A stretch of DNA of 62,889 nt, filler included, from Polymyxa betae A26-41 (taxonomy: Eukaryota; Protista; Endomyxa: Phytomyxea), in assembly GCA_003693705.1 (NCBI GenBank). It is 7 parts of 7 records of this genome, joined end to end, with 100 filler letters (N's around TTAATTAATTAA, not from the genome) between each part and the next. Parts side by side here need not be neighbours in the genome. Positions count along the whole stretch, not along the records: positions 30,086 to 42,859 come from RBZT01000092.1; positions 42,960 to 51,090 come from RBZT01000893.1; 5 more parts are not named here. One strand, 5' to 3'. The translations under genes were made by a program, and so were the position numbers. Under the pieces are notes generated by a model. The model made no database searches, was not told the DNA's origin, and saw only the letters and a list, made by a program, of their open reading frames with translations. Shown one piece after another: positions 2,440-51,090 of the stretch (positions are counted from its first letter, which is position 1; each line of letters opens with the position of its first letter).

Positions 2440-5400
2440 GTGATTCGCATTCGACAAAGGCAAGCATCTATGCCGATTCTGGCGCGACCTGTCATACATT
2501 TTGCCAGAGAGAATGGTTTCATAATTTCAAGCCTGTTTCAAATTATCTCAACTGGGGCGATGGAAGTAGCACCAAAATTACCGGAATTGGCGATATCTCT
2601 TTGATTACTCAAACTCAAGACGGCAAAGCCAAAGTCATTTTATATGATGTTCGTTACGCTCCTGAATTCAAGATTAACCTGATGAGCATCAAAAAGGCAA
2701 CTTCGGTAAACTTATCTGTAACTTTCAAAGATAACAATATGAAGTTGATGGACCCGAACGGCAAGACGATTATGAAAGCTTTTGCTTCTGAGCATGATCT
2801 ATACAAGATTCAAGCCGATGTTTGTCTACCATCACGTCAAGAAATTACATTGGCAACGAGTGAAATCCGTAACGAACAAAAGTTACCGTTGATGCAATGG
2901 CATGCTCGACTCGGTCATCTTAACGAGAAATCGATACTGAAGATGGCATCTGACGCCAACGTTACTGGAATGACTCTTCCAGACCAGAAATCCCACCTTT
3001 GCAAGCCCTGTGTGGAATCGAAAATGGCCTCGAAACCATTTCCAGCGAGTCGAACTCCGAAAGCAAGTGAGCTTCTTGATCTTATCCATATTGATCTGGC
3101 CGGACCGATGCAGACGAAAACACCAGAAGGCGCCCGATATTTCGAAGTTATTGAAGACCAAGGACCAGATTGGACCTGAATTTGAACGACTTAAGAATAT
3201 GCTGGAATTGCAAACCGGAAAGAAAATCAAGAGAGTGAGAATGCATCCTGCTGGCGAAAATCGAGGAGGAAAACTCTTCAACCTTCTGAAAGATAATGGA
3301 ATAAGAGTTGAACTGGCAAACGCTGGATGTCAGCAGCAGAATGGAGCTGCTGAGAGAGCGGTTAAAAGTATCTGTACTGGAGCACGGTCATTAATGTTGA
3401 ATGCAGGTGCACCTCAAGCGCTCTGGGGCGATGCTGCGTTGGCCTACACTCTTTGAAGAATAAGAGTCCGAGCACAGTTCGAAACAATGCAATCCCGGAG
3501 TACCTATTTACTGGAAAAACGATCAACACCGGCCATATTCGAGTTTGGGGTTGTATCGCTTACGCCAAGAAAACGAATCCTGATGGAAATTTCGATTCAA
3601 AAGTGACTGAATGTCGACTAGTTGGACAACAACGGAACTGATAGAGAAGGGACAAAAGGATGGACTCTGCGATCTCGGCAGACAGGACGATATATATTCA
3701 GCAGAAATGTAACATTTGATGAATCAAAGGTGATGAAGAAAATGAAACCGAACATACAAGCGGTCGACACTGAAGAAGACGAGGAAAATAATTCGACCGA
3801 TGATGAAATTGAAGAATCAAATGACAATGAAATTCTGGAAGATGATGATAACTCGAAAGAAGTACCTGGTGAAAACGACAATGATTCGATCGCTAAAGCG
3901 AAAGCGAAACGAAAGACAAGACCGCCAGAGAGATATAATCCACAGATCGGGGCCTTTACGAGAACAAACGATATGGACTTCGCTCTTTTAACCAGTCCTG
4001 AACAATTCGTCAATGAGGATCGTGAAACCTTTGAAGAGGCATTATCAGGAGAACATGTATTAGAATGGAAACAAGCAATGGATGAGGAGATTCAAGGACT
4101 TAAAGAAATGGGAACGTTTGAGGAAACGGAAATTTTGAAGACTGATAAGATCAGGAAAACTAAATTTGTTTTCAAAACCAAACATGATGTTGACGGAAAC
4201 GTACTTCGAAGAAAAGCTCGTTTTGTTGCCTGTGGCTACTCTCAACGACCTGGTGTGGATTTTGATGAGACGTACGCACCGGTTGGACGAATGGTCACTA
4301 TTCGAGCGTTGATGTGTAAAAGTGCAATCGAGAAACTGCCAGCTAGACACGCTGACATCGAGAGAGCCTACACAAATGCAGCAATCAATGAAAGAATTGT
4401 AATCAAAAGTATCGAAAACCTGGAAAATACTGGATCTTGAAAAAGGCCTTATATGGATTGAAACAATCGGGAAAAGCATGGGGCGACGAATTAAACAAGA
4501 CCCTCTTAAAACAAGGTTTTGAAAGATACGAATCAGAGCCATGCCTGTATATGCGAAATGATGAACTTATTGTGGTCGTAGTTGACGACTTATTCATGAC
4601 AGCGCCGATGTTTAAGCAGTTAGACAATATCATCCATGAATTATCCATCGCTTACAAAGTCAAGGACCTAGGACCAGTTCGACATGCGATAGGGATGAAA
4701 TTTCAGTTCGGGGAAAATTATGTGAAAATTTCGCAAACTCATTATATCGAAAGTATTCTCACGAAATTTGGAATGAAAGACTGTAAACCGGTTTCAACAC
4801 CGATGGAAAAGGATGGAAACGAAATGATCGAGAAAATAACACATCAAGATGGAACTATAGATCAAGAGCAAGGATTGAATGAATTACCTGAAAACCAAAA
4901 GACAATGTATCGAAGCCTGGTTGGAGCTATGATGTGGTTATCAGTCGGAACCAGATATGACATTGCCTATGCAGTTACGACATTAGCCATGAAAATATCT
5001 AAAGCCAATCAGAGTGATCTGAATAAGGCAAAACGTGTTTTAGCGTATTTGAAAAAGACAAAAAATATTGAATTGAAACTTGGAGGAAATGAGCTGATTC
5101 TTCAAGCTTACTGTGATGCTGCACTTGGCGAAGATCCTAAGGCAAGATCCCGTATGGGGTACATGCTGCGCGTAGGTGAATTCCAGCCTATATCTTGGTC
5201 GTCAAGAACCCAGAAGAGTGTGGCAATAACGACTGCGGATGCGGAATATATGGCGTTGAGCGAAACAGTGCGGGAAATTTTGTGGGTGCGCAGCCTCCTC
5301 GGAGATATCGGTCTCAATCAGGAGTCGGCAACTGTGATTTTGAGGACAATATGGCCTGCATTAAATGGGCAACTGAACCAAAATTGAGTGCTAGAACTAA

Positions 5401-8400
5401 ACACATTTTCCGCCGATTACATGCTGTAAAAGAACTAATCGATCACAACATAATCAAGATCGAATACGTACCTTCTGACGATCAGCTTGCTGATATTATA
5501 ACCAAACCTCTACAGAAGTCGGTCACTCGCGTGGCGTTTGCGAGGTAGGGTTGTGTGAGGTCGTCGGAGGAGGACAGCGTCCCTTGGAGACAGCAGGCGA
5601 GCCGAGGCGGAGCCGGCCCGATGGGCCAGGGCCTTAATCCTGAGCCCAAGAAGCGACCTCTCTCTACCAGCCCCAACGGCGCCAACCGAGCGGGCCGAGA
5701 GAGTCCCCGCCATGACGTTGGATGGAACCGAGTGTTGGGCCTTGCCCTCACTCTGATCTTCAGGCTGTTGGTGGCTGGGGCGGACAGGATCTTGATCCAT
5801 GTCCCGCTTCTATACCCATTAGGACAATACGTCAGCATCTGCGGGATTGCTCTGGGTACGACCTTTTGCGGGTTACTCCCGTACGAACTATACTATACGA
5901 ACACAACATAATAATACAACAATAACACACACAATAACACAGGAATATGCAGAGAACAAAACAAAACCAGCATGTTTTACAACACGGCTACCAAAGAGTT
6001 CCCCTACTACTCGTCCTCATACAAAAACACAGACTTGCACTGAAATAATCTCACCCTTAAACACCCCGATCACAAACAAAAACCATATAAAACCCAGCAT
6101 AAACAATCCAACGAAATCGGAAGATATAATAAGCCCTTCACAACGATTCTACCCCAAAAAGACGATATCACACAGGGGACTCCCACAAATCAAAATACAA
6201 TCAGCTGATACCCTTAACAAACCGACCTACAATCAATACTATCAATACAAAACGCTGGAAAGTATAACACACAAAAAGTTGACACAAATTATACAAAAAT
6301 TTTACGAAATTAGAACCTGTAGAAGAAGCAGCAATATTAGAGGCGGAACGTATAATAGGGCTAAGTCCGCCACGGGATCCGAAACCCACGCAGTCCTGAA
6401 CTCTTGATGTTGCTGTTCGTCTTGATGGGCTGCAGCTCCAACATCACAGCCAATGCCGCCCTGAGCTGCTGATCCATCATCAAGAGGAAAGCCGTCATCC
6501 TCAATGTCCATGTCAAACATGTCCCCGATCACGGCCGCCCTCTTGTCCACGGTCTTGACATCATCGACTTCCTGGAATGGAAACACAGATTCATAGAAGA
6601 ACGCATTCCGTGATTCCACGATCGTGCGCGTTTCCCAGATCAGGAATACCCATGCCTTTTTCGATGTCGAAACCCCCAAGTGAACAGCCCGTTCCGCCTC
6701 CGGTTTCAGCTTCTCCTTCTTTTGGAGACTTATCATCACCCACGCTTCACATCCCCAGACCCTCGCTCGGGATAGGTTCGGTCGCTGACCTGTCAGCGCT
6801 TCAAAAGGAGTGGTACGACCTTGATGACGATTAAGTGGAGCACGATTATGTACCCACGTCGCGTTTGCGGCGGCATTAGACCAAAAGGATTCCGGCGCGC
6901 AGGATCGGACAAGACATGCCCGAACCATAGCGACAATCTTGCCCGCCAATCACCTCAGGGAGTCCATGTTGAAACGCCATCCGCAAAATTCCTGATGGAT
7001 TCCGTCCATATACAATACCTCACGAGAAGAATTTCCGACATATTCGCCATCCTGGTCCGAGCGGAGCACCTCCACGATCTGTCCGGACATCCGTTCGAAT
7101 CTCCGCAAAATCGCCACAGTGTACTTCTCCGTTTCGGACTTTTTAGCCATGGTCACTGTAGCCGCGAACCCAGAGGCATGATCAACCCATATTCCCATGT
7201 AGAGCATACCGTCGTGACTTCTTGTCGAAAACGACTGTAGATCAGCTCCGACAATTTGAGCCAGTCGCAATGTCCGGGTCCTTCGTTTCGGGGTCGCCGA
7301 CATCTTCAGGTTCGCCTCAATACAGATACGGTATTTGCAAGAAGCCATATGGTCCGTCTCGTCAATCCGTAGTCCATCCACGGACTTATTTTGGTTCATC
7401 CTATATAACGTTTGAATACTTATGTCACAGAGTCTCTGATGCGCAAGCTCCGTAGAGATCGCGCCAGGTAAATGGCCTTGGTTTGGAAGTTCGCCGGGGG
7501 AGACCAAGGCGCTCCCCCTTAGCAAAAATCCTGTTCCGCGTGTAGGTCCAGATACAGCAGACCTCTGCGGACAGACCCTGTCACCAACACTTTCCCGTCC
7601 TTATTGACGATCTTTGATGAGCGCGCAGTTTCACGATGTTCTGCGCCCTTCCCCAATTTGGAAAGCGCCGCCCTAATCGCAAATAGGTTCGCAACAGAAT
7701 CAGGGGCATATCCAGCATCGACCGTGATGAAAGTCCCGGTAGCAGCACGCAAAACAACATCCGCGACCATGGACCTGAATACGGTCCCCGCCAACTCCAC
7801 CGACAGTCGGTCGTTCGTTCTCCTCGAACATTTTCAAATTCTTAAAATGCTCTCTGCAACTGGAAAAGTGTCCGCAAGTCATCGCACCATCCATGACCCA
7901 GTCGCGCATGCCCTTCCGAGGAGACTTGCCGCTCGACAATGCTATGCAATATGCGCCTGACCATTACTATTGCCGTCCCCACTGCTCTTGCAGTCAGACA
8001 ATCGATGTCCGAACTTACCGCATTTGAAGCAGTTGCCTTGAAATCCGCCACTATTCCCGTTTCCTCCGCGTCCTCGACGCCCTCGACCGCGTCCACCGAA
8101 CATCGCGTACCCGTCGTTCCCGGCCGAGGCCTGGTCCGTAACCGCCATCCGCCTCAGTAGGGAGATCACGTCGTCAAGGATATTACTCGGAGTTAGGTCC
8201 ACAGAAAGATCTGACAGGCGTTTGTATCGGATCTGCTCCATGTCGTTGGGCAGTGACATGCACATCAGAACAGCTATCACCAAGTCCGGAAGTGCACGGT
8301 CTTTTTCGATCTCCTTTAGACGCAGGTTCAAATCCGTCATAGACTCGAAGTGCTCTCACCGAGCCTTTTTCCGAAGAGCTCAATCAGAAGCGTCGCCATA

Positions 8401-8750
8401 TCCTGATTTGTGGAACCAGCATATTCTTTTGATAACGCGTCCCAGGCACCTGCTGGATCGTTCGCGAATGCCTTGATCAGGGTGAGCTGATACAATGTTG
8501 ACATTCCGGGTGATCGCCTGCATAGCCTTGGCCTTCTTAATCGGGTCCGTGGCAATCTCCGCTTTGGATTTGTCCACATAGTCACCAAGACCGAATTCGG
8601 TGAGCAGCGTTGTCATCGCAAACCTCCATGATGTATAGACGCTGCGTCCGTCCAGCTTGAAGCCGATTGACAGGCTTTGGTTACTGGTAGTTGGATCACT
8701 GGTCGTCGCATCGGCCTCGTCTCCCATTGCACTTGCTCGCTAGGTAGAAG

Positions 8751-8765
8751 TGGGACTCTTAATCT
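8751..8765 (-). promoter_or_regulatory. PBS AGATTAAGAGTCCCA complementary to the tRNA-Lys(CUU) anticodon arm
   Basis: Lies between the LTR and the gag ATG; the same 15-mer is at 50403 and 51266. Confidence 0.8.
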
Positions 8766-8911
8766 GATTCTACGGAATGTGATGTTCAGTATTTAGGGCA
8801 CTTTCAATTGTATTCATTACTGATCATCATGGCCTCGACATCAGCTGTGATAGGCGGCTCACGCGACTCACGCATGAGAGCCGTGTGACGTCACGCCTGA
8901 TCCTTGGAACA
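8765..8911 (-). repeat. 5' LTR of Copia-2 (~147 bp)
   Basis: On minus TGTTCC...AATCA, bounded by the PBS on one side and resumed Gypsy RT coding on the other. Confidence 0.65.
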
Positions 8912-10810
8912 ACAATGCCATCTCCGAAAACTGCAGCGGATCTTATGCACTTTCTTTGCGCTGCGACTAGGATTAGAACTCATATACCTGACTTTGAGCG
9001 TCACGTACGTCCGCTGCGCGACCTTTTGGAGCAACTGCTCCATGGTCAACAGTCTCGTTTTAAGGCTGTCTCGCGGCGTATTCCTATCATGACGCACGCT
9101 TGGACTTCTGAAAATGAGGATTCTTTTCGTAGTACTATTAGCGCGATTTCAAACGCGGTAACTCTATACCATCCGCGTGAGGATCATGATCGCTGTCTTT
9201 TTACTGATGCTTCAGCAGATTCTTATTCTATTATTATAACACAGGTCGAACCTTCAGAGCTCAGTAAGCCTTTTCCTGAACAAAATCACTTTCCGTTAGC
9301 ATTCTTTAGTCGTAGTTTTCGGGGTTCGTCAGCTCGTTGGGCTATTCCCGAAAAGGAGGCGTTCCCTATTGTAGATGCAATTCAACGATTCGATTATCTT
9401 CTGATTTATGATCGTAAACTACGTATTTTCACTGATCACCGCAATCTTACGTTTATCTTCAACCGCGAATCGACTTCGTTTCCTTTGAAACAACACACTT
9501 TGGATAAATTGTATCGATAGGCCCTGAAGCTTAGTTCTGTTGATTATGTTGTTGAGCACATTCTAGGACAGTTCAATGTTTGGGCGGATATGCTTTCGCG
9601 GTGGGGTGCTGGTCCTTCAGTTATACCACTCCGAGTTTGTAGATTGAAACGACAGTCCAACATTCCTGCAGGCATCGTTAATCCTTTGCAGGACCACGTG
9701 TTCCCTACAGAGTCTGAGATTGCTGATGTTCAGCGCGAAGCTCTAAATGGTGATGTCGAATCCTACGCTATTGGATCGATTAATTTTTTTCGTAATCTAG
9801 CTGGACTTTTATTAGCGATACTGGCGTCCTATGGATTCCTGATAGTGCTAAAACTCTTCAACTACGTATTTTGATAGTCGCGCATTGTGGCTCTTCTGGC
9901 CATCGTGGTGTCTCAGCAACGCTTTCTGTTTTACTTCCTCGCTTTTTTTGGTCGAATATACGAGCTGATGTCGCGGAATTTGTTCGCTTATGTTTACATT
10001 GTGTGCCAGGCAAAGCTGGTGATGTAGTCCCTAGACCGTTCGGTGCAACAGCTGCTCCTACAGTTGCTAACGAGATTATTGATTTCGATTATCTATATAT
10101 CGGTCCTTCTAATTTTCAGTCAAAACACTTGTTGGTTATTCGCGATCGACTTTCAGGCTATGTCGATATGTTTCCTGCGGTTGAGCCCAGCGCTGATCAC
10201 GCCGCCGATTCTTTGTTAGATTGGTTTTCTCGTCATGGAATAGCCCCCGTTTGGGTCACAGACCGTGGTACTCATTTTGTGAACTATATTATTGCTGAAT
10301 TAGCTCTACGTATGCGTGCCACACATCACTTTCACTTGGCGTACTGCCCGTGGACGCACGGAGGTGTCGAAACAGCTAATCATCATATTTTATCGGTCTT
10401 TCGATCGTTAATTTCGGAGTTTCGCCTTGCTCTGCGTGATTGGACTTTGCTAGTACCAATTGTACGTTTTGTTTGAATAATACCATTCCGCCCGCCTTAG
10501 GTTTCGCCCCGATTACATTGTTCACTGCACGAGATCCGTCGACTCCTCTCGACGCAATTTGGAACCCACGTAAACAGGAGATTATGTCAATGCCCCTGTC
10601 GGAGATGGCCAAGCGTGTTTCTGACTTGAAAGAGTCGTTATCTAAAATGCACGCTGACGCTGCCGAAAGTCGTGTTAGTATCCGAGTTCTGTCATTGCTG
10701 ATCTCGTTTTTTCTGTTGAAAATCTGGCCTCACATCAGGTTTTTGAGATTCACGAACAGCGTCTTCGATTTTACTCAGATTCAAATCTGAGTGTTACAGA
10801 TGACTTGTTA
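8912..10810 (+). mobile_element. Ty3/Gypsy pol remnant (Gypsy-1): RT end, RNaseH, integrase
   Basis: LFTDAS, WAIPEKEAFPIV, IFTDHRNL, HHCC (AH..GHRG..CLHC), [12 protein letters not shown]; stops and frameshifts present. Confidence 0.92.
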
Positions 10811-10833
10811 ACTGTGTAGTATGGTTGTCTCAC

Positions 10834-10933
10834 NNNNNNNNNNNNNNNNNNNNNNNNNNNNNNNNNNNNNNNNNNNNTTAATTAATTAANNNNNNNNNNN
10901 NNNNNNNNNNNNNNNNNNNNNNNNNNNNNNNNN
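10834..10933. other. artificial contig linker (100 nt of N with central TTAATTAATTAA); also at 29986-30085, 42860-42959, 51091-51190, 55024-55123, 59469-59568
   Basis: Six 100-nt spacers of the same design with stop codons in all frames. Confidence 0.97.
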
Positions 10934-13900
10934 TAGGAGACAAACGACACAGATGGCAACGCAGGAAATAAAATCAGCCAGCACACTGACACCGCTCACG
11001 CTCAGTTCTAGCAACTGGCTAATATGGCGTCGGGCCGTGCTCGCCGGAATGAAGCGAATCGGGGCCCTAGGCATCCTGCAAGGGACCGAGAAGAAACCCA
11101 GCAAAACTGCCGAAATACACATGAAGCCGAATCTCGAATCAGATCCAAAGTCAGCTCAAGTTCTGCACTCTTTATTGAATGAAGCTCGTCAGCAATACAA
11201 AGAAACGCTGACTGCGTTGAAAGCAGCAAAAGCTGCAGTAAAAGAAGATACAGAAGACGTTGACAGAAAGACAGCATTACTCGCAGATGAGGGAGAGGCC
11301 GAAGAAGCTGAAGACGCCTATCTCAAGATTCGTCAACAGCGTGCCAGCACGAAAACTACTCCAACGCTGACCGGATCACTATGGACACCATCAGAAATTG
11401 ACGACTGGGAGAGACGACACGATTACGCATACCACCTTCTGGTAGTATCACTGTCTGAACAGTACCAAGGCATGACAATCAAGTGTCCCGATCTGCCATC
11501 CTTGTGGCGGGCGCTCGAACAGCATTTCGAAGGCAAATCGGCCGCGGATGTCATTCAGGTGGAAAATCGGCTGATGTCGTTGGCGCTGACCGAGAAAGAT
11601 GATCCAGAAGAGTTCCTCAACGAGATCCGACTGATCCAGACTCAGATGGAAAGTTGTGGCGCCCCTTACTCAGACGCGAGAATGTTCTTGACCATCGCTC
11701 AGAAACTCCCTCCAAGAATGCATGGTCTCGGGGATCAATTCCTGTACGGGCCGAAGGAGCGCCAAAATATTGCCTCACTGGAACAAGCCATCAGCGAATT
11801 CGCGAAGAACAATCCAGTCAAGCGCGAACCAGAAAAAGCAAACCTGGTGGAAAAGAAAGAGAAGATAAAATGCAAGCACTGCAAGCTAAAAGGTCACAAG
11901 AAAGAAAAATGTCGAGCCAGATCACACAAATGCATCAAATGTGGTGAAACTGGACATTTTGAAAAGAGGTGTAAAAGTGAAAAGAAAACAAACGAACCTC
12001 CTGCTCCTAAAGAATTGTCGCATTACGCCTTCTCAGTGACTGTGCGGAAATGGGTCGTGGACACAGGAGCCTCATCATCCATCAGCTCCAATGTTGCAGA
12101 AGCTCATCGCACCAATGGCGAATCGCTTACACTGGCGGACGGGTCGACAATCGCGATCACCGGATCAGGACCACTGAACGCCGGATTCCGCATCTCACAC
12201 GTTTTACAGGTACTTCAAGCAAGCACGAATCTACTCTCGTTAGGGAGAGCATGCGAAGACGGCGACATCGACTCGGCCACCTTCGACAACAACGGATTCA
12301 GGCTCTACAAAAACGGAGGCGTCATCGCTTCTGGAGTCAAGCAAAACGGACTGTATCTACTTGAGGAGGGCGGGCGACCAGCACATGTACACATGGCGGT
12401 CTCAACACAGCAATGGCATCGACGACTCGCTCACGCACCGACAAAGACGATCGAAGGATAGTGAACGAAAAGACAGCTAGCGGCGTCGACCTGCAAAAAG
12501 GAAAGTCTGAGTTGACCTGCGAATCTTGCACATCAGGGAAGTCAAAACGCTTACAGTTCCAATCTCGAGACGAAAGCAGACGCGCAGACAAGCCAGGAAC
12601 AGTCCTGCATACAGACCTCTGCGGTCCCATGCAAACCCAGACTATTCAGGGAGTACGATACGCAATGCCGATAATCGACGAATTCTCAAGATTCGTCACT
12701 GTATATTTCCTGAAATCGAAAGACGAAGCCGCCGACGCTTTACTGGAATGCATCCAGCTCTACCGGACTCAGAAGGGCACCTATGTCCAGGTTATTCAAG
12801 CCGATAATGGTGGGGAGTTTACTTCAAATTACCTTAAAGGCAAATTGAAGAAGGGGATCAAATTGCAAACGACGATACCATACATACCTCAGAAAAATGG
12901 AGTCGCAGAGCGTATGAATCGTACGTTAGTCGATCGAGCACGGACGATGCTATTGGACGCCGGTCTTAGTATTAAATACTGGCAACATGCAATGGCCACT
13001 GCAGCACACATCACCAGCAGAATCCCTTCAGCGGCGTGCGGCCACAAATCGCCTTACGAGCTGTGGACGGGTCAGCTGCCTGACATCGGGCACGTGAGAG
13101 TCTTCTGAGAAGCGCCGTAAGTTCGATCCGAAGGCAATTCTCGGAATCTTCCTTGGATACGCTACCGGGCAAAAGGGATACGTGGTGCAAGACCCTGAAA
13201 GTGGAAAGATAATAGTCAGCAGCGACGTGACATTTGATGAGAATCAACTACCAGCTAAGAAGTCGACGGAGAGTCTTAATCTTGACGTCATCGAACGACA
13301 GGTTAGCGGGTCGATCAACGAGACGATTGATGACGAGCAGCCGGCGGAAACGAATGACGAAGCAGGGCAGCCACCGACCAATGACGAAGCTGAACAGGTT
13401 GATGAAGACAAGACCGATGCACCGCCGAGACGATCTTCGAGAGTAACGGGGCAGCCGGCGCGATACGCCGACGAACAAGCAGACGAAATGATACGAAAAG
13501 GACAGAGCAAGTCTTCTGGACATGCCGCGGTCTTGGTGAAAGAGCCGAAAAGCTATGATGACGCCATTGACGGACCAAACGCCGCCAAATGGAAAGAAGC
13601 TATGAACAAGAATATCAGTCACTGATGAGGAACAAGACTTGGAACCTTACCAAATACCACGCGGGCGGAAAGCGATTAAATCCAAGTGGGTATTTAAGAT
13701 CAAAACTCTAGAGGACGGCACCATGGACCGCTTCAAAGCGAGGCTCGTCGCCCAAGGCTTTTCGCAACGCCATGGTGTTGACTACGACGAGACGTTCTCG
13801 CCGGTTGCTACGAAGGCCACGATCAGAATACTTATCGGCTTGAAGTCGCAGGGGTGGTACGTACGGCATGTCGATGTCGATACAGCTTATCTCAACGCGG

Positions 13901-14264
13901 ACGTTGACACCGAGCTTTACATCCTGCAGCCGAAGGGATTCGAGCAATACGACGACCAGGGAGAGATCCTAGTATGCAAGTTAAGAAAGGCAATATACGG
14001 CTTAAAACAGGCTGGCTTAGCCTGGTATGATCACCTTTCGAGACTGTTAATGAAGTTGAAGTTCAGGAAGTCGCTTCACGACCCATGTCTTTTTATCAAT
14101 ACCGCTGGAGTTTATCTGGCGACCTACGTGGACGATATAATTATAGCATCAAAGTTACAAGAAGCTGTTACCGCAGTCGAAGATGGGATGGAGCAGCATC
14201 TGAAGATCAAGCGCTTAGGAGAGATAAGACATTTACTAAGATGGAAGGTCACCAGTTTAGAGAG

Positions 14265-14478
14265 TGTAGCAAATTATTACTTTATTAGAAGAAAATACAA
14301 GAATAGTTGGCAAGTTTCCAAGCTACGACGAGGCTGCGCTAAGATTCGCCCACGGAGTCCTGCGGACACCGTGACGGCCTTTGGGTCCTGGACGTTTCCA
14401 TGACTGAAATACAGATTCATTCTAGATTCTGCCTTCGTCTTTGCGTGTCAAATTCCTAGGACTATTACGACCGCTACA
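14265..14478 (+). repeat. 5' LTR of Gypsy-2
   Basis: TGTAGC...GCTACA inverted termini, starting where copia RT similarity stops. Confidence 0.8.
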
Positions 14479-14497
14479 AAGAATTCTTCCTAGCAGG

Positions 14498-16222
14498 ATG
14501 GCTACATTGACGATTACAACTGATGACGAACCAATCTTCGATGATCAGGAGATAGTCTATGACTGGAGAACTCCAACCGAAGAAGACGACGAAACGGGCC
14601 AAGGATCTGTTGAAGAAGTTGATGATGACCATAGTCAACGAATGCTGAACAATGGCGACGACCAGGACACGGGAAATAGCCTCGGTGCGCCCAATAATGA
14701 AGAATTGGTGGATAACCATAGCCGCCAGAGGACTGATAGCCGAACACGAAGCGTGGCCTCCGGCAATCTCGCTGTGATCGAGACGAACAAGGCTCCGGTA
14801 CTCCGGAAACTGGATCGCAAAGCGATTCTTAAATTCGTTGACAGCAGAGAACGTTACCTGCGCAATTTCCACGATGCAAACACTGCAGGGAATCCACGTT
14901 CGTTGGTTTCGATGATAGAAACGACTATGCTGGAGACGGTCTGTGAATGCGATCTGGGTATTGATGCTGAAAGCGTCAGTGACCAAGACATCGAGGCTTG
15001 GATCAACCAGGCCTTGAAAGAGGATCGGTCGCAGGATTCTCAGATCGAGAAGAAGATGAGGAAGATGAAGATGAACTTAATGATTGAGGCCCGCAGCCTC
15101 CGGGTCACAGACCTGTTGGCCCAATTCAATAAAATTGTCAAAGACAATGGTTGGAAACACCTCTTCACCGATGAAGATGGGCAAAAGATGAAAATTCGGT
15201 TCCTTGTGAATGCAATTGAACCGAAGGAGCTCAAAACCATAATTAAAACCAAGATGAACATTGAGCCCCGGTTTACGAAGCATCCCACGGCGTTTCTGTT
15301 ACTACTGCGTGAGAAGACCATCAACCATGAAGAAACGCGAACGCTGAGCAAAAGGGAGGATGACGACAAGAAGACAACAGTGTGCAAACGGCAGCGCAAT
15401 GACGACAAGAAACCCCGTGAGATGACGAAGAACGAGAAGAATACGGACCGGTCCCAGCTGAGATGTTTCAACTGTGGAAAGTATGGACACGCAGCGTTCA
15501 AATGCCCGGAAGGCCTGTCCAAAGAAGAGGTCCACAAGCTGCTGAAAAAGCACGATAATAAATTCAAGAAGAATTCCAACTACGATATGGTCTGCAGGAT
15601 TGGTAGTGTCCTAGATGAAAGTCGCCAGATAGATGTGAAGATTAGTGATGGTCTGTATGTCCCTGGCATACTTGACAGTGGCGCCACGGATATGTCGCTG
15701 ATCCCACTTCGAATAGCGCAGATGGCGATTCGAAACGACCCAACAATCAAGACGGAACGGCTAAGACAGCCAGTACGACTTCGACTAGGTGACAACAGAA
15801 CTGAGGTAGAAGCCACGGAGTGCGTCAGACTAGATATTGGGCTACGCACAAAAGTCGGAGAAATTGTTACTAGACAGCGAAAGTGCCTGGTCTGGGACGT
15901 TCCTAGTGATGAGATCATACTTGGGAGTGACCTATTAGAAGAACTTGGCATAGAACCAAAAACTGCGCTTGACGCATTAATTATCCAAAAGAGGGCCAGA
16001 ACAGATGAAGTCAAGGTCACAGAAGAAGAAGATTCCAAAGGCGACGAGACCTTATCGGAAGATTTCGAAGATTTTGATGACATGGTAATAAAAAACCACA
16101 CAGATGTCGAAGAAATCGAAAAAGGTCTGAAACCCTTAACTGAAGAAGCTAGAAGAAATGGATTACCAGAAGAATGGACTTCAGCTGGCTCATACACAAG
16201 TATCGAGATGTATGGCGGGTGA
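14498..16222 (+). CDS. gag: Gypsy-2 Gag-protease
   Basis: Long ORF with CFNCGKYGHAAFKC, ILDSGAT and IILGSDLL. Confidence 0.85.
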   Translation: MATLTITTDDEPIFDDQEIVYDWRTPTEEDDETGQGSVEEVDDDHSQRMLNNGDDQDTGNSLGAPNNEELVDNHSRQRTDSRTRSVASGNLAVIETNKAPVLRKLDRKAILKFVDSRERYLRNFHDANTAGNPRSLVSMIETTMLETVCECDLGIDAESVSDQDIEAWINQALKEDRSQDSQIEKKMRKMKMNLMIEARSLRVTDLLAQFNKIVKDNGWKHLFTDEDGQKMKIRFLVNAIEPKELKTIIKTKMNIEPRFTKHPTAFLLLLREKTINHEETRTLSKREDDDKKTTVCKRQRNDDKKPREMTKNEKNTDRSQLRCFNCGKYGHAAFKCPEGLSKEEVHKLLKKHDNKFKKNSNYDMVCRIGSVLDESRQIDVKISDGLYVPGILDSGATDMSLIPLRIAQMAIRNDPTIKTERLRQPVRLRLGDNRTEVEATECVRLDIGLRTKVGEIVTRQRKCLVWDVPSDEIILGSDLLEELGIEPKTALDALIIQKRARTDEVKVTEEEDSKGDETLSEDFEDFDDMVIKNHTDVEEIEKGLKPLTEEARRNGLPEEWTSAGSYTSIEMYGG

Positions 16223-42000: not shown

Positions 42001-43067
42001 TGAATGGAACAAGTATATTAAATAAATGAAACAAACGTGTCCGTCTGCTTGACAGTACATCTTTCTTGGAGGGCCATTAGCTCAACGATCGATATCAGGG
42101 ACCATCGGGTCGCTTAATCCCATCCTTGGTCCAGGTTGAGGTATCGGTCTGAACATTGATAGAAAGCGATACTTCAATGCAGCCCTGTGAGGCTGCATCA
42201 ACTTTGTCACGAAAATTTTCGAGCTCTGTCTGCAAGGCTGTATAACCTTGGGATGGTAGAGCTCCAAGGACACCGTTTTAATCCACTGCGCAAAAAGGTC
42301 CGCCATCAGGTAAGTCCAAAAGTGACTTACATATAGCGGATTTTTTCCCCTAAACCCTAAATCGGCATCAAAACTGTTCCCAGCTGTAAAATTTCGACAG
42401 CAGTGCAATTGTGGGAATCCTCTTGACCGCTGACAACTTCTGGGTTGCTCCCATGTCTTCAATATGTTCTTCATTTACAACTTCCCGTTGCATTATCTTC
42501 ATCGTACGCGTGTAGATGGGCTGGTTCGTTATCGTATTCTAAATCATCGACCATGACTTGGCAAATGGCATCCACAGGCAGAGACGCCTCGTTATCATTG
42601 CCACGATGAGCGGCAGCAAGCGATACGGCGGGCTCGCATCCGCTGGTGGTGGAAAACAGAGTCCAAGCCCCAAGGCCATATCGACCAACGAAGACAAAAT
42701 GCGATCGCTCCCCATTTTACAGTCACGCAAGTTCCTCAGCTATAACTTTAAACTTGCAGATATGTATGGTTGTGCGAAAGACTAGCTATGTAATGAAGCA
42801 GTAATAGAACCCTGTTGTTATTTCTCGTTTTTTTCAGCTTGTGTCAATATTTGTAGAATNNNNNNNNNNNNNNNNNNNNNNNNNNNNNNNNNNNNNNNNN
42901 NNNTTAATTAATTAANNNNNNNNNNNNNNNNNNNNNNNNNNNNNNNNNNNNNNNNNNNNGCTGCTCATGACAGATTCAATTCTTAACGATTGAATGAAAG
43001 ATATCATGATGCCATCAAAATGTATTGCAAAAAACGTGCGTCTGAGATCAGGGGGGCAGCACGACGT

Positions 43068-43583
43068 TCACGGAGCCGCTCCATTCCTCAAAACCCGATC
43101 GATCACGGCCAGCATCTCCTTGAGAACGACGTCTTCAGGGAATTCGGCCACGCCCCATTCGTACGTGCTGGCCCATTCGCTTCTCCGGCGTCGTAATTGC
43201 TCGAGATCGTACGACCCGGATTGTACGACGACAAACATGGCGACGAGTCGCGAGCGGCGATCGCTTAGGTGCCGCACGACTGCTTCGGACAGGATCTCTT
43301 TCGACTCATTGATGCGTCCTTCAATTCGCTCCATCGAACTGTTTGTCATAATCTGGTCTTTGAATCTGTCCCTGAAAATTCGGAGCGCTATGTTGTACTC
43401 GGTCCAATTAGTCTCGGTGAAGTTCTCGTCGAGTTGTTTCGCCAGATGGAGAATGTGCTCGCTTAATCGATCAGCGCTCATCTTGTTCAGATCGGTTTCC
43501 TTTGGAAATCGCATCATGAGAGCAACGCCCACAATAGAGGCCGCCACCACCATCAGAACAATTAAGCATTTCCAGGCCTTCAT
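43068..43583 (-). CDS. tandem SEWASTYEW family protein, copy 1
   Basis: N-terminal hydrophobic helix, LSEHILHLAKQLDENFTE, GSYDLEQLRRRRSEWASTYEW; paralogous to four neighbours. Confidence 0.8.
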   Translation of the reverse strand: MKAWKCLIVLMVVAASIVGVALMMRFPKETDLNKMSADRLSEHILHLAKQLDENFTETNWTEYNIALRIFRDRFKDQIMTNSSMERIEGRINESKEILSEAVVRHLSDRRSRLVAMFVVVQSGSYDLEQLRRRRSEWASTYEWGVAEFPEDVVLKEMLAVIDRVLRNGAAP

Positions 43584-45146
43584 CCGGCTGAGATTTGCAG
43601 TTTTCGCGTCCTGAATCCTGCAGCTCTAAAACAACATCTAGGACTGCTGTAGCCTCAAAAGGCCGGAGCAGATTCTGTGCAATTAATCTCTCCGCATCAT
43701 TCCTGACTCTCGCGAACTCGAGAAATTTTTACGAAACATATTCGCAGGGTTTTCCGAACCCGGATCGACGTTGGTGATCCTCAGGTGGTGGTTTCTATCA
43801 ACGAATGGGAGACGTCCCAGCGGGGTTCGTTGGCGATGAAATTCGTTGATATCGAAACAACCGTATTGAACATCGTCTGAATGAAGCCCACGAACCGCTT
43901 AATACAAAAATTCCGCTAACACGAAGGCGGTTTCGGGTTCAGCGAAACGAGAGCGGTCGGAGCCGGAATTTTGTTCGAATCTCTATCTGTAATCTTCCTT
44001 ATGCAGGGCCTTGTTTTTATTTTCAGGCCTGTATCCATATTGTGCTATAGAAAAGATTGACACTTAATATTGGATTGCAGAAGGATCGCCATTACGGCGT
44101 CTCCTGAATCTGTTCGAATGAGCACGGATTTTGTGGCCAAATTCTGGTTGACGTTCTGCAGGTGCAGGACGCCAGTAATTGATGATTTCAATCATTGGTC
44201 GTGTTGCACTGATCGCAGATATGCACGGGCTTTGTGCTACTTGATGTTGACTACTTCCGGGGACTTTATTGTTCGCCTGACGACCGCAACTCCGATACAT
44301 CATTTCGTGGTCGTGTTTCACCTTGGTTTTCAGGATCACAAACGAAGCAGGAGCAATAAATTATGTGGAACGATGTCGGCGACCATCAATACCTTATAGC
44401 CAGATTCTAGACGATACGATCTAAGGATCGCTTTGTTGATACGATCCTGCTACACAGGCATCTATCTTTATATTGCCTCAAATTACTTTGCTTTCTCGCG
44501 TTTACTTTCAAGATTCTCGGAAATTTTTACGTCATCTGGAATCATCCTGTTGAAACAGAGCTGGACCAATTCGGACTCATGTTCATGGCCTTTAATTCAT
44601 AGCGCCCGCATCCTATCGCCTTCAGTTTGATTACTCATGCATGAAGATGCGAAATGTGAGTGTGAGCCTCAGAGCTGGTTCTACTTAACAAGGCCCTTCG
44701 CGATGGAGGAATTAACTCTGTCAATATCCATCATGCTATCGCAATACATGTTCATGTAGTGGTTTTATTGAACTTTCTCGACATTTAAGTTGGTAGGACA
44801 ATAGAATAGACAATCTTGATCTGGTCATCTGGAACTTTTTCCAGTATCTTATGATAGCGGATGCTACTGTGCTTTGCTCGCTATCGTGTGCAATTGCTCT
44901 TCTCGAGAAATACCGACCTTTGCTGTCTTGATTCAAAGCAGAGCATGTTTCGGTAATCACGCTCAGTTCAAATCGTAAATCTAGCCATTCAGCTTCTATG
45001 ACAGATTCTGCTGATGCCATGAGCTCGGCTCGGCTTCAGTGGTTGATAAGGTATTTGAAGATGTTTTGAATTGCTCTCCATACATTACACTGCTCCAGCT
45101 AATCTGATTATCAAACGTCTCTCGGTAAGGGAAAACAAAAAAGGAA

Positions 45147-45217
45147 TGCGCCATCCGGGAATCGAACCCGGACCAACTCGTTGGCAACGAGCTATTGTAC
45201 CATTCAACCAATGGCGC
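45147..45217 (-). tRNA. tRNA-Gly (GCC)
   Basis: GCGCCAT/ATGGCGC acceptor stem, GCTCG-TTGCCAA-CGAGT, CCGGG-TTCGATT-CCCGG, downstream T-run. Confidence 0.95.
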
Positions 45218-45971
45218 ATCTCTTTCCCTCTAAAATATCAAACATCTATGACGTCTTTCACGGAAGGCAAGTCAGATACCGAATGCGTGGATTGGTTTTT
45301 CCCGCCAGAATGTCATGATAACACTTCACAGCACCCATGCAGCCTCGTTGCGCTCGAAATCCTGCAGGCCGGCAAGCGTTTTTCAAGGAAGGAAGGGCTT
45401 TAGGGTTTTGATAAGGAATAGCGCCATTTGGTGGCCAAGACCATTCCGTCTCTAAACGTACGATATGTTTCATCGAGCTAAACAAGCGAAGTTCCGGTGA
45501 GGGCAAAAATCTCGTCAATTATCTCATTATGCCTGTCTGGCCTATACAATGATGTGTTAAATCATCGCTGCCCGAGCTGTCGAAGATCGGGGAGCTCACA
45601 CCGGAAAGAGAAGATCCTCCCAACCCAATGTATTTTGTCTAGTTCGTGAATCTTTGTCAACAGGCGGCGTTATTCCCTAAGCGCAAGGCCGATTTGGTTG
45701 ACTCTGAATTCACGCTCCAACAATCGCCTTTCGGGATCTGGTGCTGTCCAGAGCCGCAAATTGCTCTTAACCAAACGTTACGAATGCTGATCAATATGAC
45801 GCTTCAATTTTTTAAGTCTTTCTATGGCCGACTGATGGTATCGAGCAGCTCGAGCTTTGAATGTTTTCATAGATAGAGCTGCTCATGACAGATTCAATTC
45901 ATAACGATCATTCAATGATAACTAAATATCATGGAAAAAGTGCGTCAGAAATCAGGGCCAGCACGACCTTT

Positions 45972-46514
45972 TCACAGAACCACTCCACCGTTCAAGACCA
46001 GATCGATCACGATCAGCATGTGTTCGATGTTGTCGTCTTCGGGGAATACCTTCCCGCTCCATTCGTACGTGCTGGCCCATTCGCTTCTGTGGCGTCGTAA
46101 TTGCTCGATATCGTACGAGCGCGATACGACGTCCGAATACATGGCAACGAGCCGTGTGTATCGCTCGTTCCCGAACCGATCGATTGCATCGAGAATGATC
46201 CGTACGGACTCGTTGAGACGTTCCCCCTCAATGATCGTCACCGTTGTGTTTTTGAATCTCTCATGGAGAATACGATCTGCATTCCAGAACTCCGTCCAAT
46301 TATTCTCGGTGAAGTTCTCGTCGGCCTGTTTAGCCAGGTGGAGAATGTGCTTGCTTAATCGATCAATGTTCATCTTGTAGGGATCCGTTACCTTGAAAGA
46401 ACCCGTTGTGATACCGACAATAACGCCCACAATGAAGGTCGCCATAATAATCAGGCCGATTGAGAATTTGCAGATCATCGACCAGCAGAGTTTTCCAGTT
46501 TTCGGGTTCTGCAT
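45972..46514 (-). CDS. SEWASTYEW family protein, copy 2
   Basis: Same motifs and TM helix; shared flanking DNA. Confidence 0.8.
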   Translation of the reverse strand: MQNPKTGKLCWSMICKFSIGLIIMATFIVGVIVGITTGSFKVTDPYKMNIDRLSKHILHLAKQADENFTENNWTEFWNADRILHERFKNTTVTIIEGERLNESVRIILDAIDRFGNERYTRLVAMYSDVVSRSYDIEQLRRHRSEWASTYEWSGKVFPEDDNIEHMLIVIDLVLNGGVVL

Positions 46515-47564
46515 TCAGCTGCAATAGATCGACATGTTAAATAATGGCTGAATCACGGCTGAAGCCGACAAGCGTCAGGACAGTTTTTTGAGCAATCGAT
46601 CTCTCGGAATCAATCCTTTCTGGTTCCGATCATTGTCCACGATATCGTGAACAGTGACATGCTGTATATTACAGCATGTTCGCAGCGATTTCCGAACCCC
46701 CTGATTGATGCTGGGACGAATGGGATTGGCTCCTGTATATCATCTCATACTCGATGATATCGAGCGAGTCAAATTACACCATTGGAAGGATTCGATCAGG
46801 TGTCGGCTGCCAGATTCTGGGTCTTGAATCGAACCAAACCAACATAACATGAAGAATACCATCTGAAGGAATTTAAGTTTGGGTCGAGACTCCCATCAGA
46901 AAAGAAATTGAAGTTGCTTTTTTTAGGGTTTTAATTTTTTTTACTGTTTTTTTTCTCTGAATGTTTAGTTTTTAGTTTTTTTTTGAGTTTTTATTGAAAT
47001 TATTTTCTACTCCATCGTCTGAGAATAGTTGAGCTTCATCGGACAAATCATTCAACAATCAATACACTCTTGCTGGAACAGATCTCGTTGTAGACATCTG
47101 ATTGAAGATGGGCTCGTTTGAACTGGAAAACGGAACCTGTGCTGAACTGATCATGTGATGACAATCTGGAGATGGTGAACAGCACTCAACTAGCTCATAA
47201 CACATCGCAGGTTCGTATTTCGGAAATCCTTCCAGATTATGACGGATTTTGCATGGTTCATTTCAGTGGGAGAGATTTCATGACAAATCGACGAGTTCGT
47301 GAAACAGAGATAGAGGAATATTACCGCCATTATCTTCTTGTATAAGTCCCAGATATATTCCAATATATGATCAATCCGGGGTCAGATCAGGATAACAACG
47401 CGTCTGAGAGTCCACTCAGAATCCAGATTTCGAACATCTCTTCGGTCTAATTCTAATATGGGATCCGAATACGCTTATGACAGATACAATCGATAACGAT
47501 TATTGAATGTATGATATCATAATGACAATAAACGTGAGTCGGTGAATTCGGGCCAGCACGACGT

Positions 47565-48054
47565 TCACGGAGCCGCTCCATCATTTTGCAGAGCCCGATC
47601 GATCACGGCCAGTTTGCGCTTGATGCTGCGGTTTTTTCGGAGTTCTTTCACGATCAAGCTCCATTCGTACGTGCTGGCCCATTCGCTTCTCCAACGTCGC
47701 AATTGCTCGATATCGTACGACCCGGACTGTACGTCCGCATACATGACCTGGAGTGACGTGTTTCGATCGTTTACAAACCGCTCGCCTGTATCAGTAGCGA
47801 TGGTTTCGGCCTTGCTGGTGAATCGATCAACTCGCTCCTTCTCACTCACAGGCACCATCTTCTTATAGAATCTCTCATTGTAAATATCGACTCCATTCGA
47901 CCACGCCGTCCGATTCTCCTCGGTGAAGTTCCCGTCGAGCTGTTTAGCCAAGTGCACAAGGTGCTCGCCTAGTTCATCAGAGCTCATCTTGTACGGATCC
48001 TTCTCTATCTTGTTCGAATCCGTTTCAATTCTGTTGGAATCCGTCTCCTCAAAA
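47565..48054 (-). CDS. SEWASTYEW family protein, copy 3 (no N-terminal TM; exon or 5'-truncated)
   Basis: Frame stays open upstream of the listed ORF through three stalk repeats to a T9-GCAG tract. Confidence 0.6.
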
Positions 48055-48381
48055 CTGCAAAAAAAAACATTATAATATAAACCAAATCAAACGGGCATGC
48101 AGCGATCCAACAGGAGCAGAATTCTATAAAGTTCTAAAACAGCTCGAAAGGACGCTAAATACGAAAACAGCTCAACTTGCAGTGCGCGACTTCAACATCT
48201 TCAATTCATCTCTATCCTGTGTGTTTGGACTCTCGATAGTCGCTATAGTTCCAAAAATTCTAATATGGGATCCTAAACATTCATGACAGATTCAAATCGA
48301 TAACGATTGTATCTATGATATAATAAATGTCATCAAATGTACTGCAAAAAACGCGCGTCATGGGTAGGGCCAGCACGACGT

Positions 48382-49152
48382 TCAAGGAGCCGCTCCATCA
48401 TTCAACAACGCCTGATCGATTGCGGCCAGGCGATGGTTGAGGTGGACGTCCTCTTCTGAGAATACCTTCACGCTCCATTCGTACGTGCTGGCCCATTCGC
48501 TTCTCCGGCGTCGTAATTGTTCGATATCGTGCGACCCGGACTGTACATCTAAATATAGGACCTGGAGAGGCGTGTTTCGATCATATACAAACCGCTCGAT
48601 AGCAGTAGTAATGATCCGTTTGGCCTCCTTGATGGGTCGTTCAATACGCTCCCCTTCACTCATTGTCACCCATTCTGTTGAGAATCTCGCATTGAAATTA
48701 TCGGCTGCATCCAGGTACTCCGCCAAACTAGTCTCGGTGAAGTTCTCGTCGACCTTTTTAGCCAGGTGGAGAATGTGCTCGCTTAATCCATTAACGCTCA
48801 TCATGTTGGGATCAGTTTCCATATTCTTCGATTCCATTTCTATCTTGTTCGAATCCGTTTCAATCTTGTTCGATTCCATTTCCATCTTGTTCAAACCCGT
48901 TTCCTTTTCGTTCAAATCCGTTTCCATCTTGTTCGAATCCGTTTCCTTTTCGTTCGAGTACGTTTTTATCTTGTTCGAATCCGTTGCCATCGTCTTGGTA
49001 TCGGTTTCCTTGAATGATCCCGATAATGTAAAGAGAATAACGCCCACAATAAAGGTCGCCACCACAATCACGCCAATCAAGCATTTCCAGACCTTCGACC
49101 GACTGAGTGTTCCAGTTTCGGGGTCCTGAATCCAGCTTCTGTAGAACGACAT
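48382..49152 (-). CDS. SEWASTYEW family protein, copy 4 (longest, ten 7-aa stalk repeats)
   Basis: 256-aa ORF: short N-tail, TM, ten ETDSNKM-like repeats, conserved domain. Confidence 0.85.
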   Translation of the reverse strand: MSFYRSWIQDPETGTLSRSKVWKCLIGVIVVATFIVGVILFTLSGSFKETDTKTMATDSNKIKTYSNEKETDSNKMETDLNEKETGLNKMEMESNKIETDSNKIEMESKNMETDPNMMSVNGLSEHILHLAKKVDENFTETSLAEYLDAADNFNARFSTEWVTMSEGERIERPIKEAKRIITTAIERFVYDRNTPLQVLYLDVQSGSHDIEQLRRRRSEWASTYEWSVKVFSEEDVHLNHRLAAIDQALLNDGAAP

Positions 49153-49199
49153 CTTTAATGATGGCTGACTCAGGGCGGAAGCCGCAAAAGATCAGGTGT

Positions 49200-49316
49200 G
49201 AGCAGTGTCTGCGCAATATGCCGCAAAAGGTCAGAGCAGTGTCTGCGCAATATGCCGCAAAAGGTCAGAGCAGTGTCTGCGCAATATGCCGCAAAAGGTC
49301 AGAGCAGTGTCTGCGC
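49200..49316. repeat. 34-bp tandem repeat, ~3.4 copies, upstream of copy 4
   Basis: Exact unit GAGCAGTGTCTGCGCAATATGCCGCAAAAGGTCA. Confidence 0.95.
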
Positions 49317-49835
49317 TATAATCTCTCAGAATCAATCCGGACCCGATTCAAACAGTTCTCGGTTGACAGATTCTGGGTCTTTGAATCGATTTAATCCTTA
49401 ATAACATGAGGAACACAATCTGACGACATTCAAGGTTGGATCGAGACTCCCATCAGAAAATGAATTGAACTGATGATTGGATCGTCTCGGAATAGTTGAC
49501 CATTATCGGGTCAATCTCTAATAAACAAACCCGTGGTTACTGTTAGGGTTTGTGCAGACTCGCATCCGAACTACAAACTACTGCAGGCGCCTGATTTGGT
49601 CCTGCGGATCGTTTTGTTGTTACAGTAGTCATACTGACCGATCAAGATGACGCTCTTTAACGCTTTCTTTGACCTCGATTTGGTATCGAACAACTCTCGA
49701 AAGATGAACAATTTCTTAGATCGAGCTGCTCATGACAGATTCAATTGATAACGATTATTCAATGTATGAGATGATATATTAACGCCATCAAATGTCATGC
49801 AAAAATCTGCGTCGAAAATAGGGCCAGCACGACGT

Positions 49836-50277
49836 TCACGGAACAGCTCCATCATTGTCAAGGGCCTGATCGATCACGGCCAGCATGTGGTTGATCTTGA
49901 TTTTGACGTCTCCGGAGAATTCCTTCAAGATCCATTCTTATGTGCTGGCCCATTCGCTTCTGCGGCGTCGTAATTGCTCGATATCGTACTCCCCGGACAG
50001 TACGTCCAAATACATGACCACGAGTGCCTTGGCTCGCTCCTTTGTAGACCGCTCGACGGCTTTAATAACGATGATTACGGCCTGATAGAAGCGTCGTCCA
50101 ATTCGCTCCCTCCCAATCATTGTCGCTCTTTGGCTGTAAAATTTTTTGCTGAAAATATGGCATGCTTTGTTGTACTCCGCCAAATTATTCTCGGTGAAAT
50201 TCTTGTCGAACTGTTTAGCCAGGTGGAGAATGTGCTCGCTTAATAGATCAGCGCTCATTTTGTTGGGATCCGTTTCC
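49836..50277 (-). pseudogene. SEWASTYEW family copy 5, with premature stop and copia insertion
   Basis: TAC>TAA in ST(Y)EW; 5' part replaced by an LTR from 50278. Confidence 0.85.
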
Positions 50278-51090
50278 TGTTAGAAGAGATCGACCGTGAC
50301 ACGACGCGCGATCATCATGAGTCAAGTCAAGTTCTGTTTACTTACGAATAATGGTCAGTGAATAAAAATTACGAAAACTATCCTCAACCGACTAACTCAA
50401 TTAGATTAAGAGTCCCAACTCGCCTCTGAGCTATCATGACTAACGGATCGCAGCAGTCCTCGGAACCTGTTGCCAGTGGCACCGCTGATGCCGCTAGCAC
50501 CATGAACATGTCCATTGGTTTCAAGCTCACCGGAAAGGAGATTTTCACAACGTGGACGTTTGCAATGAACACCATGTTGTCCGCTTATGGACTTTCCGAT
50601 TACATTGACGCGGGTAAAGCGTCTCTCGCTACGGATCCCCTCAAGAAAGCCAGAACGATGCTCGCGATTACCAGGAACATCGATCTGAGCCAGCTGACGC
50701 TTATCAAAGCATTTGCGAATGATCCGGCGGGAGCATGGGCGGCCCTGTCGGCCGAATACGCTGGAAAGACGAGTCAGGACATGCAACGCTCCTCATCGAT
50801 TTGTTCGGCATGCGCCTGCACAGTAACGCGTCGGTTGAGGATGCGAAGAAGCACTTTGAGGCGATGGTGGATTTGAACCTGCGTCTGAAAGAGATCGAAG
50901 AAGAGCGTGCTCTGAAGGACGTCAGGATGGGCGTCATCATGTGCATGTCCCTCCCAAACGACATGGAACAAGTTCGGTACCGTCGGCTATCGGGACCTTC
51001 CAAGGAATTGACCCCATCCAACGTTCGCGATGATGTTATCTCGTTGCTTCGACGGATGGCGGTCATCACTGATTCTACTGACTCGAACGC
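50278..51090 (+). mobile_element. Ty1/copia 5' end (LTR 50278-50403, PBS 50403-50417, frameshifted gag); same family as Copia-2
   Basis: Gag shares SIGFKL, ATDP.KKA, LTLIKAFANDPAGAW and MCMSLPNDMEQ with 8727-7942. Confidence 0.9.

Follow-up and report, generated by a model that had tools for sequence, protein, structure and literature searches.

A tandem array of five paralogous gene copies in Polymyxa betae, three of them encoding predicted membrane-anchored proteins with conserved and variable blocks

What kind of protein is encoded by the five similar genes standing in tandem in one piece of the Polymyxa betae A26-41 genome, and what has kept some of their parts nearly constant while others diverged? 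The genes occupy record RBZT01000893.1, which forms positions 42960-51090 of the window (the whole stretch of DNA analysed, 62,889 nucleotides long); the GC (guanine plus cytosine) content of this piece is 46.1%, and that of the draft genome is 45.1% (PMC6328671). At this locus, a gene has been duplicated in tandem together with its flanks, two copies have been lost, and selection has acted on the family. The reading favoured here, with a probability of about 55%, is that the genes encode proteins anchored at the surface of the parasite, in which a helical core is conserved and the faces that vary are shaped by host contact, and that the family turns over by tandem birth and by death through 5' loss or transposon insertion.

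Layout and fate of the five copies

The five paralogs all lie on the minus strand, without introns, and their proteins are 50-57% identical; the co-orientation described in the initial annotation is borne out. Copies 1, 2 and 4 are intact single-exon open reading frames (ORFs), and copies 3 and 5 are broken (Table 1); the long plus-strand ORFs found over each copy are, in our judgement, antisense shadows in the frame that shares wobble positions. A related 3' flank accompanies all five copies (nucleotide identity 62-79%), and related 5' flanks with shared repeat families are found at copies 1, 2 and 4 (copies 2 and 4 share 80% identity across 125 nt), both as first annotated. In copy 1, a short basic tail is followed by an uncharged helix (residues 6-24), one stalk unit and a five-helix domain. 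The stalk had been read as a single stretch of seven residues; the unit length stands, but the number of such units varies: copy 4 has ten, copy 3 has three and each of the other copies has one. At least two further copies of the family lie elsewhere in the genome, as judged from loose ends and joints in the contigs of run X2.

Copy 3 has an in-frame stop at 48087-48089, its homology to the other copies stops near 48065, and the DNA upstream is unrelated to their 5' ends. This junction is crossed by contigs of the independent DNA run X2 and is, therefore, not the error of one assembly. A T-rich, acceptor-like signal at about 48056-48068 raised the idea that copy 3 might begin with a spliced exon, but this is unlikely, no upstream frame with a hydrophobic helix being seen. 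Copy 5 is cut by a copia-type long terminal repeat (LTR) retrotransposon; the comparison with run contigs covered the stretch without copy 5, and the breaks in this copy rest on the present assembly. Broken copies were translated only with X at stops, or as separate pieces. The birth-and-death evolution proposed at the outset is, thus, supported by the tandem copies, by the 5' loss in copy 3 and by the retrotransposon insertion in copy 5. Nothing was found to indicate that the family is itself transposon-encoded: the copies contain no Pfam transposable-element domain and have no flanking inverted repeats, and the copia element is an insertion into copy 5. The description of the region as rich in transposable elements holds for this one element at the right end and for a short repeat fragment at 45634-45693, but is otherwise overstated.

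Coverage in run X4, a bulk sample of unrecorded kind, was judged from contigs. Copy 1 was covered at 100%, copy 2 at 86% and the distal intergenic DNA at 10%, with no coverage of copies 3 and 4; one paralog from elsewhere was covered alongside copies 1 and 2. This pattern is the one that transcripts of copies 1 and 2 would give, a hint rather than proof, as it comes from contigs; the absence of expression from every copy, named initially as counter-evidence, was not observed.

Conserved blocks, variable blocks and selection

The alternation of conserved and hypervariable blocks reported initially is borne out by nucleotide identity among the five copies, which is 0.83 in block A, 0.61 in the middle block, 0.93 in block D, 0.63 in the loop and 0.81 at the C-terminus. 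Block D has a W-x-x-(K/T)-Y-x-W core that is retained in distant relatives. The outgroup proteins keep the stalk-to-helix-1 motif and the W-x-x-K-Y-x-W core, with neither the NFT sequon nor the arginine run, which marks these two as local features of the array copies. The sequon is indeed present in all five copies of the array, as had been noted, but it cannot be considered a hallmark of the family. Cleavage or targeting through the RRRR run was rejected as a property of the whole family, given that the outgroups keep just the W..Y.W core.

The conserved block had also been described as almost identical at synonymous sites, which went too far. The proportion of synonymous differences (pS) is 0.17 in block D, versus 0.28-0.38 in the other blocks, and 77% of its four-fold sites are identical, versus 69%; synonymous changes are present at four of 13 invariant degenerate columns, and the slower synonymous rate in this block is not significant (p = 0.20). 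In the gene-conversion test suggested earlier, none of the five copies showed a tract (all p > 0.16, with low power for short tracts or outside donors), which leaves the implied synonymous homogenisation unsupported. On the conversion scan and the synonymous-rate test, gene conversion was rejected as the cause of the conservation of block D, which purifying selection on this Trp/Tyr/Arg-rich stretch is enough to explain.

By counting, the ratio of nonsynonymous to synonymous rates (dN/dS, or omega) is 1.27 in the middle block and lies at 0.21-0.44 where the blocks are conserved. When all blocks shared one synonymous rate in a codon model, with block boundaries picked after the data had been inspected, the omega was 0.38 for block A, 1.59 for the middle block (p = 0.005 against 1) and 0.10 for block D. 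The block-free comparison of models M2a and M1a on the five copies yielded a doubled log-likelihood difference of 26.8 (p = 1.5e-6), with about 18% of sites at an omega of about 4.5, and remained significant when double-nucleotide changes were allowed (p = 9e-5). The codon-level check proposed in the initial annotation, therefore, places the middle block at an omega of 1.3-1.6, not well below 1. Sites with a high posterior probability lie mostly in helices 2-3 and, by helical phase, point roughly away from the conserved face. In run X2, copy 3 shows three differences in 247 nt, two of them amino-acid-changing, versus three in 5421 nt in other long pieces, a post hoc hint of allelic diversity of this copy.

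Predicted topology, fold and distant relatives

The N-terminal hydrophobic helix is kept only in copies 1, 2 and 4, which makes three predicted membrane-anchored proteins and not the five originally counted; copy 3 has lost the helix, and copy 5 breaks off at 50277. All seven full N-termini (copies 1, 2 and 4 and four outgroup proteins) have a basic tail and, after it, 19-27 uncharged residues in a row; in each, positive charge is greater on the N side of this run than on its C side (charge difference -1 to -8). A basic tail before an uncharged helix, with the N side more positive, is the classic pattern of a type II signal anchor. The intact copies are, thus, predicted from their sequences to be type II single-pass membrane proteins, in support of the topology first suggested.

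AlphaFold modelled the ectodomain as five helices, with no other secondary structure (predicted local distance difference test score, pLDDT, 91.8; predicted template modelling score, pTM, 0.80). No specific fold match was obtained: the matches from VIA-align were all three-helix bundles of a generic kind (Z of at most 9.4, over 84 residues), Foldseek found nothing in the PDB or among viral structures, and the template modelling (TM) score in the ESM Atlas was 0.50 or less. Helices 1-3 superpose on FliT (5gna), the YpkA Rho-binding domain, BAG and SNARE Habc with Z 7-9.4, but this is under the chance level for helical bundles (Z of about 13) and extends over about 85 of 143 residues at 7-12% identity; similarity to three-helix bundles carries no functional inference. 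No catalytic motif was seen in the family, and a role in binding or display is, therefore, the simplest reading.

A hidden Markov model (HMM) profile searched against 1.84 billion protein representatives recovered three relatives (E 2e-16 to 9e-8, 20-30% identity), all of them unnamed singletons on metagenome or run contigs. One is encoded on a 21-kb, intron-bearing eukaryote contig (L001), together with two more, broken copies in tandem. The five array copies group in a single clade (support 95/98), separate from the outgroups and with near-star branching, and arrays have therefore arisen, or been renewed, separately in each lineage. No domain match for the family was found in Pfam, PDB sequences, or viral or bacterial collections, and none to the ankyrin, LRR, LysM/chitin-binding or kinase folds of plasmodiophorid effectors. 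A further profile search returned only the relatives already found; the ESM Atlas, searched by features and by structure, exact look-ups, and related-locus scans of metagenome, viral and prokaryote collections gave no match. A word search was also blank, but it covers only lengths of 0.55-1.75 times the query and is weak evidence, so that the claim of absence rests on the HMM search. The family, unrecognised at first sight, remains so after HMM and structure searches, which gave no housekeeping or transposable-element domain.

Contig L001 has two other features of note. Adjoining its tandem cluster, at 5158-6850, is a split gene with WW and MyTH4 domains, of a type typical of eukaryotes. At 7500-14654, a block richer in AT (43% GC versus 55%) contains phage- or Polinton-like genes, including a protein-primed polB-like piece and an AAA ATPase, and is joined to eukaryote DNA, which may reflect either an insertion or a chimeric contig.

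Interpretation and neighbouring features

In the array, gene and flanks have been duplicated in tandem to yield new copies, and copies have died through 5' loss or retrotransposon insertion. In the favoured reading, each intact gene would give rise to a protein whose short basic tail lies in the cytosol, whose helix stays uncleaved and whose stalk, differing in length among copies, carries a compact outer domain of five helices; it would be displayed on the surface of the plasmodium within the host cell, or on that of the zoospore. The conserved blocks, two of them under purifying selection, would maintain the fold. The variable faces of the helices, mostly of helices 2-3, would meet host proteins, as binding partners or as an immune-recognised surface; host contact may then drive diversification and copy turnover. 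Topology and fold are predicted, and surface location and host contact are proposed by analogy with microsporidian host-exposed families (PMC5423893).

Several results weigh against this scheme. Fitted with its own branch lengths, the middle block has an omega of 1.45 that is not significantly different from 1 (p = 0.12). Restricted to the three intact copies, the M2a/M1a comparison falls short of significance (p = 0.07; p = 0.63 with double changes), so the diversifying selection claimed earlier stands for the five copies but not for this subset, and the codon models are our own code, applied to five sequences. Copy 4 is intact yet uncovered in runs X3 and X4, and in copies 1, 2 and 4 the helix is followed by small-residue -3/-1 motifs of cleavable signals. 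Such motifs would suit a secreted effector family, in which a long signal peptide, or a helix clipped at the stalk, releases a soluble helical domain into the host cell, where it binds host targets, as would the start of the copy 1 helix at residue 6 and the resemblance of these orphan, helical proteins of 140-170 residues to many effector candidates; "orphan helical proteins" are the largest cluster of the P. betae secretome (PMC12503489). This explanation deserves serious attention but is unlikely given the hydrophobic regions of 19-27 residues rich in beta-branched residues, the basic N-tails, the Trp residues at helix ends in the outgroups and the extended 70-residue stalk of copy 4, which fits a tethered protein; the published cluster, moreover, is cross-species, has non-consecutive P. 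betae identifiers and was built after the removal of transmembrane proteins (PMC12503489).

The result for the intact copies could also reflect a dispensable family in near-neutral drift, duplicated by local recombination and constrained only in its fold core, its high omega being due to relaxed constraint and dead copies; a whole-gene omega of about 0.8 and the breakage of two of five copies are in line with this. It seems highly improbable, however, given that relaxation cannot yield an omega above 1, that the five-copy site test is significant, that purifying selection on the conserved blocks is clear in all copies and that the family persists across 20-30% identity. A zoospore recognition receptor or adhesin, acting in root attachment, in self/non-self recognition before fusion or in virus uptake, and subject to host-range or viral pressure rather than plant immunity, would be consistent with a type II layout with a variable stalk and outer faces, and with the recurrence of tandem clusters in a distant relative. 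The cytosolic tail is, however, just 5-23 residues long, with no signalling motif seen, and no description of such a receptor was found in the literature search; this role is improbable.

Several known systems resemble the anchored family favoured here. RIFIN/STEVOR, VSG and Leishmania PSA proteins have conserved ends and a hypervariable middle, are membrane-anchored (by a C-terminal transmembrane segment or glycosylphosphatidylinositol) and are encoded in tandem arrays with pseudogenes. The array shares the conserved ends, variable middle, anchor and tandem layout with pseudogenes, but has an N-terminal type II anchor, no homology to these families, a plant host without antibodies and no conversion tract among the copies tested. 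The microsporidian NemLGF families, which have at least 10 members by definition and for which host exposure has been demonstrated by proteomics (PMC5423893), are likewise clade-specific, without known domains, equipped with a signal or transmembrane anchor, locally duplicated and rapidly evolving in obligate intracellular parasites; no sequence link to them was found, and the array family numbers five copies here plus at least two more elsewhere in the genome. Relative to the properties of host-exposed large families, it is clade-specific without a known domain, and evolves rapidly when all five copies are considered. An orphan all-helical cluster (cluster 5), probably from the same organism, was described when the P. 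betae secretome was surveyed by structure, but this cluster is cross-species and transmembrane proteins were removed beforehand (PMC12503489); the comparison was made by description, and a motif search of the supplement gave 0 matches. No description of the family was found in the literature, although two P. betae papers of 2022 fell outside the search, so that an earlier mention is possible.

The family is probably of the host-exposed, lineage-specific kind already common in intracellular parasites; as orphan, duplicated, fast-evolving surface genes are frequent in such organisms, its discovery is only moderately surprising. Tandem clusters are present in at least two lineages, and the searches detected no relative that belongs to a named protein. 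What is known of host-interaction genes in plasmodiophorids comes almost entirely from lists of soluble secreted proteins, from which transmembrane proteins have been removed (PMC12503489), and the family provides candidates for the interface between the rhizomania vector and its host, as well as markers for isolate typing. It would be a long shot to see here a variant-surface-protein system, the first in a protist that parasitises plants, with positively selected, anchored paralogs expressed by stage or isolate and setting host range or virus-vector interactions; were this true, such a system would have been overlooked in Polymyxa because secretome pipelines discard transmembrane proteins.

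Table 1. Features of the array piece, in window positions
Feature	Position	Strand	Remarks
Copy 1, intact, 171 aa	43068..43583	-	ORF call; covered throughout by contigs of runs X3 and X4
Block D, most conserved, as in copy 1	43155..43211	-	omega 0.1-0.2
tRNA-Gly(GCC), between copies 1 and 2	45146..45218	-	
Copy 2, intact, 180 aa	45972..46514	-	uncharged helix aa 17-40; 86% covered in run X4
Copy 2 5' flank	46515..47049	-	kin to copy 4 5' flank (49153-49516); about 120 nt also related in copy 1
Copy 3, 5' end broken	47565..~48065	-	body and three stalk units; hydrophobic helix lost
Copy 4, intact, 256 aa	48382..49152	-	uncharged helix aa 24-47; long stalk
Copy 4 stalk	48799..49009	-	ten 21-nt (7-aa) units
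34-nt tandem repeat, copy 4 5' flank	49200..49320		3.6 copies, 98% match
Copy 5, broken	49836..50277	-	copia LTR cuts stalk; premature stop 49938-49940
Copia-type LTR retrotransposon, inside copy 5	50278..51090	+	reaches edge of piece

The 34-nt tandem repeat lies just 5' of copy 4, the intact copy without coverage in runs X3 and X4. Between copies 1 and 2, the transfer RNA (tRNA) gene was the sole match to Rfam, and the surrounding region (44740-45750) has a second, diverged copy in run X2, which suggests a segmental duplication. The stretch at 45634-45693 is a short fragment of a high-copy repeat, at which each of the four runs has many loose ends. Intergenic DNA at 44081-44559 is covered by both X3 and X4, and its ORFs have no Pfam match; it may correspond to an unannotated transcript.

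The copia element comprises an LTR-like part (50278 to about 50403), a primer-site-like stretch (50404-50417) and gag (from 50436). The closest named relative of this gag comes from a Beta vulgaris (sugar beet) assembly, in which it occupies a contig of 597 nt that is probably parasite DNA inside the plant assembly. The primer-site-like stretch is also found in a contig of the sugar beet assembly (L004) and complements the anticodon arm of tRNA-Lys(CUU), which suggests that the element may be primed by a half-tRNA.

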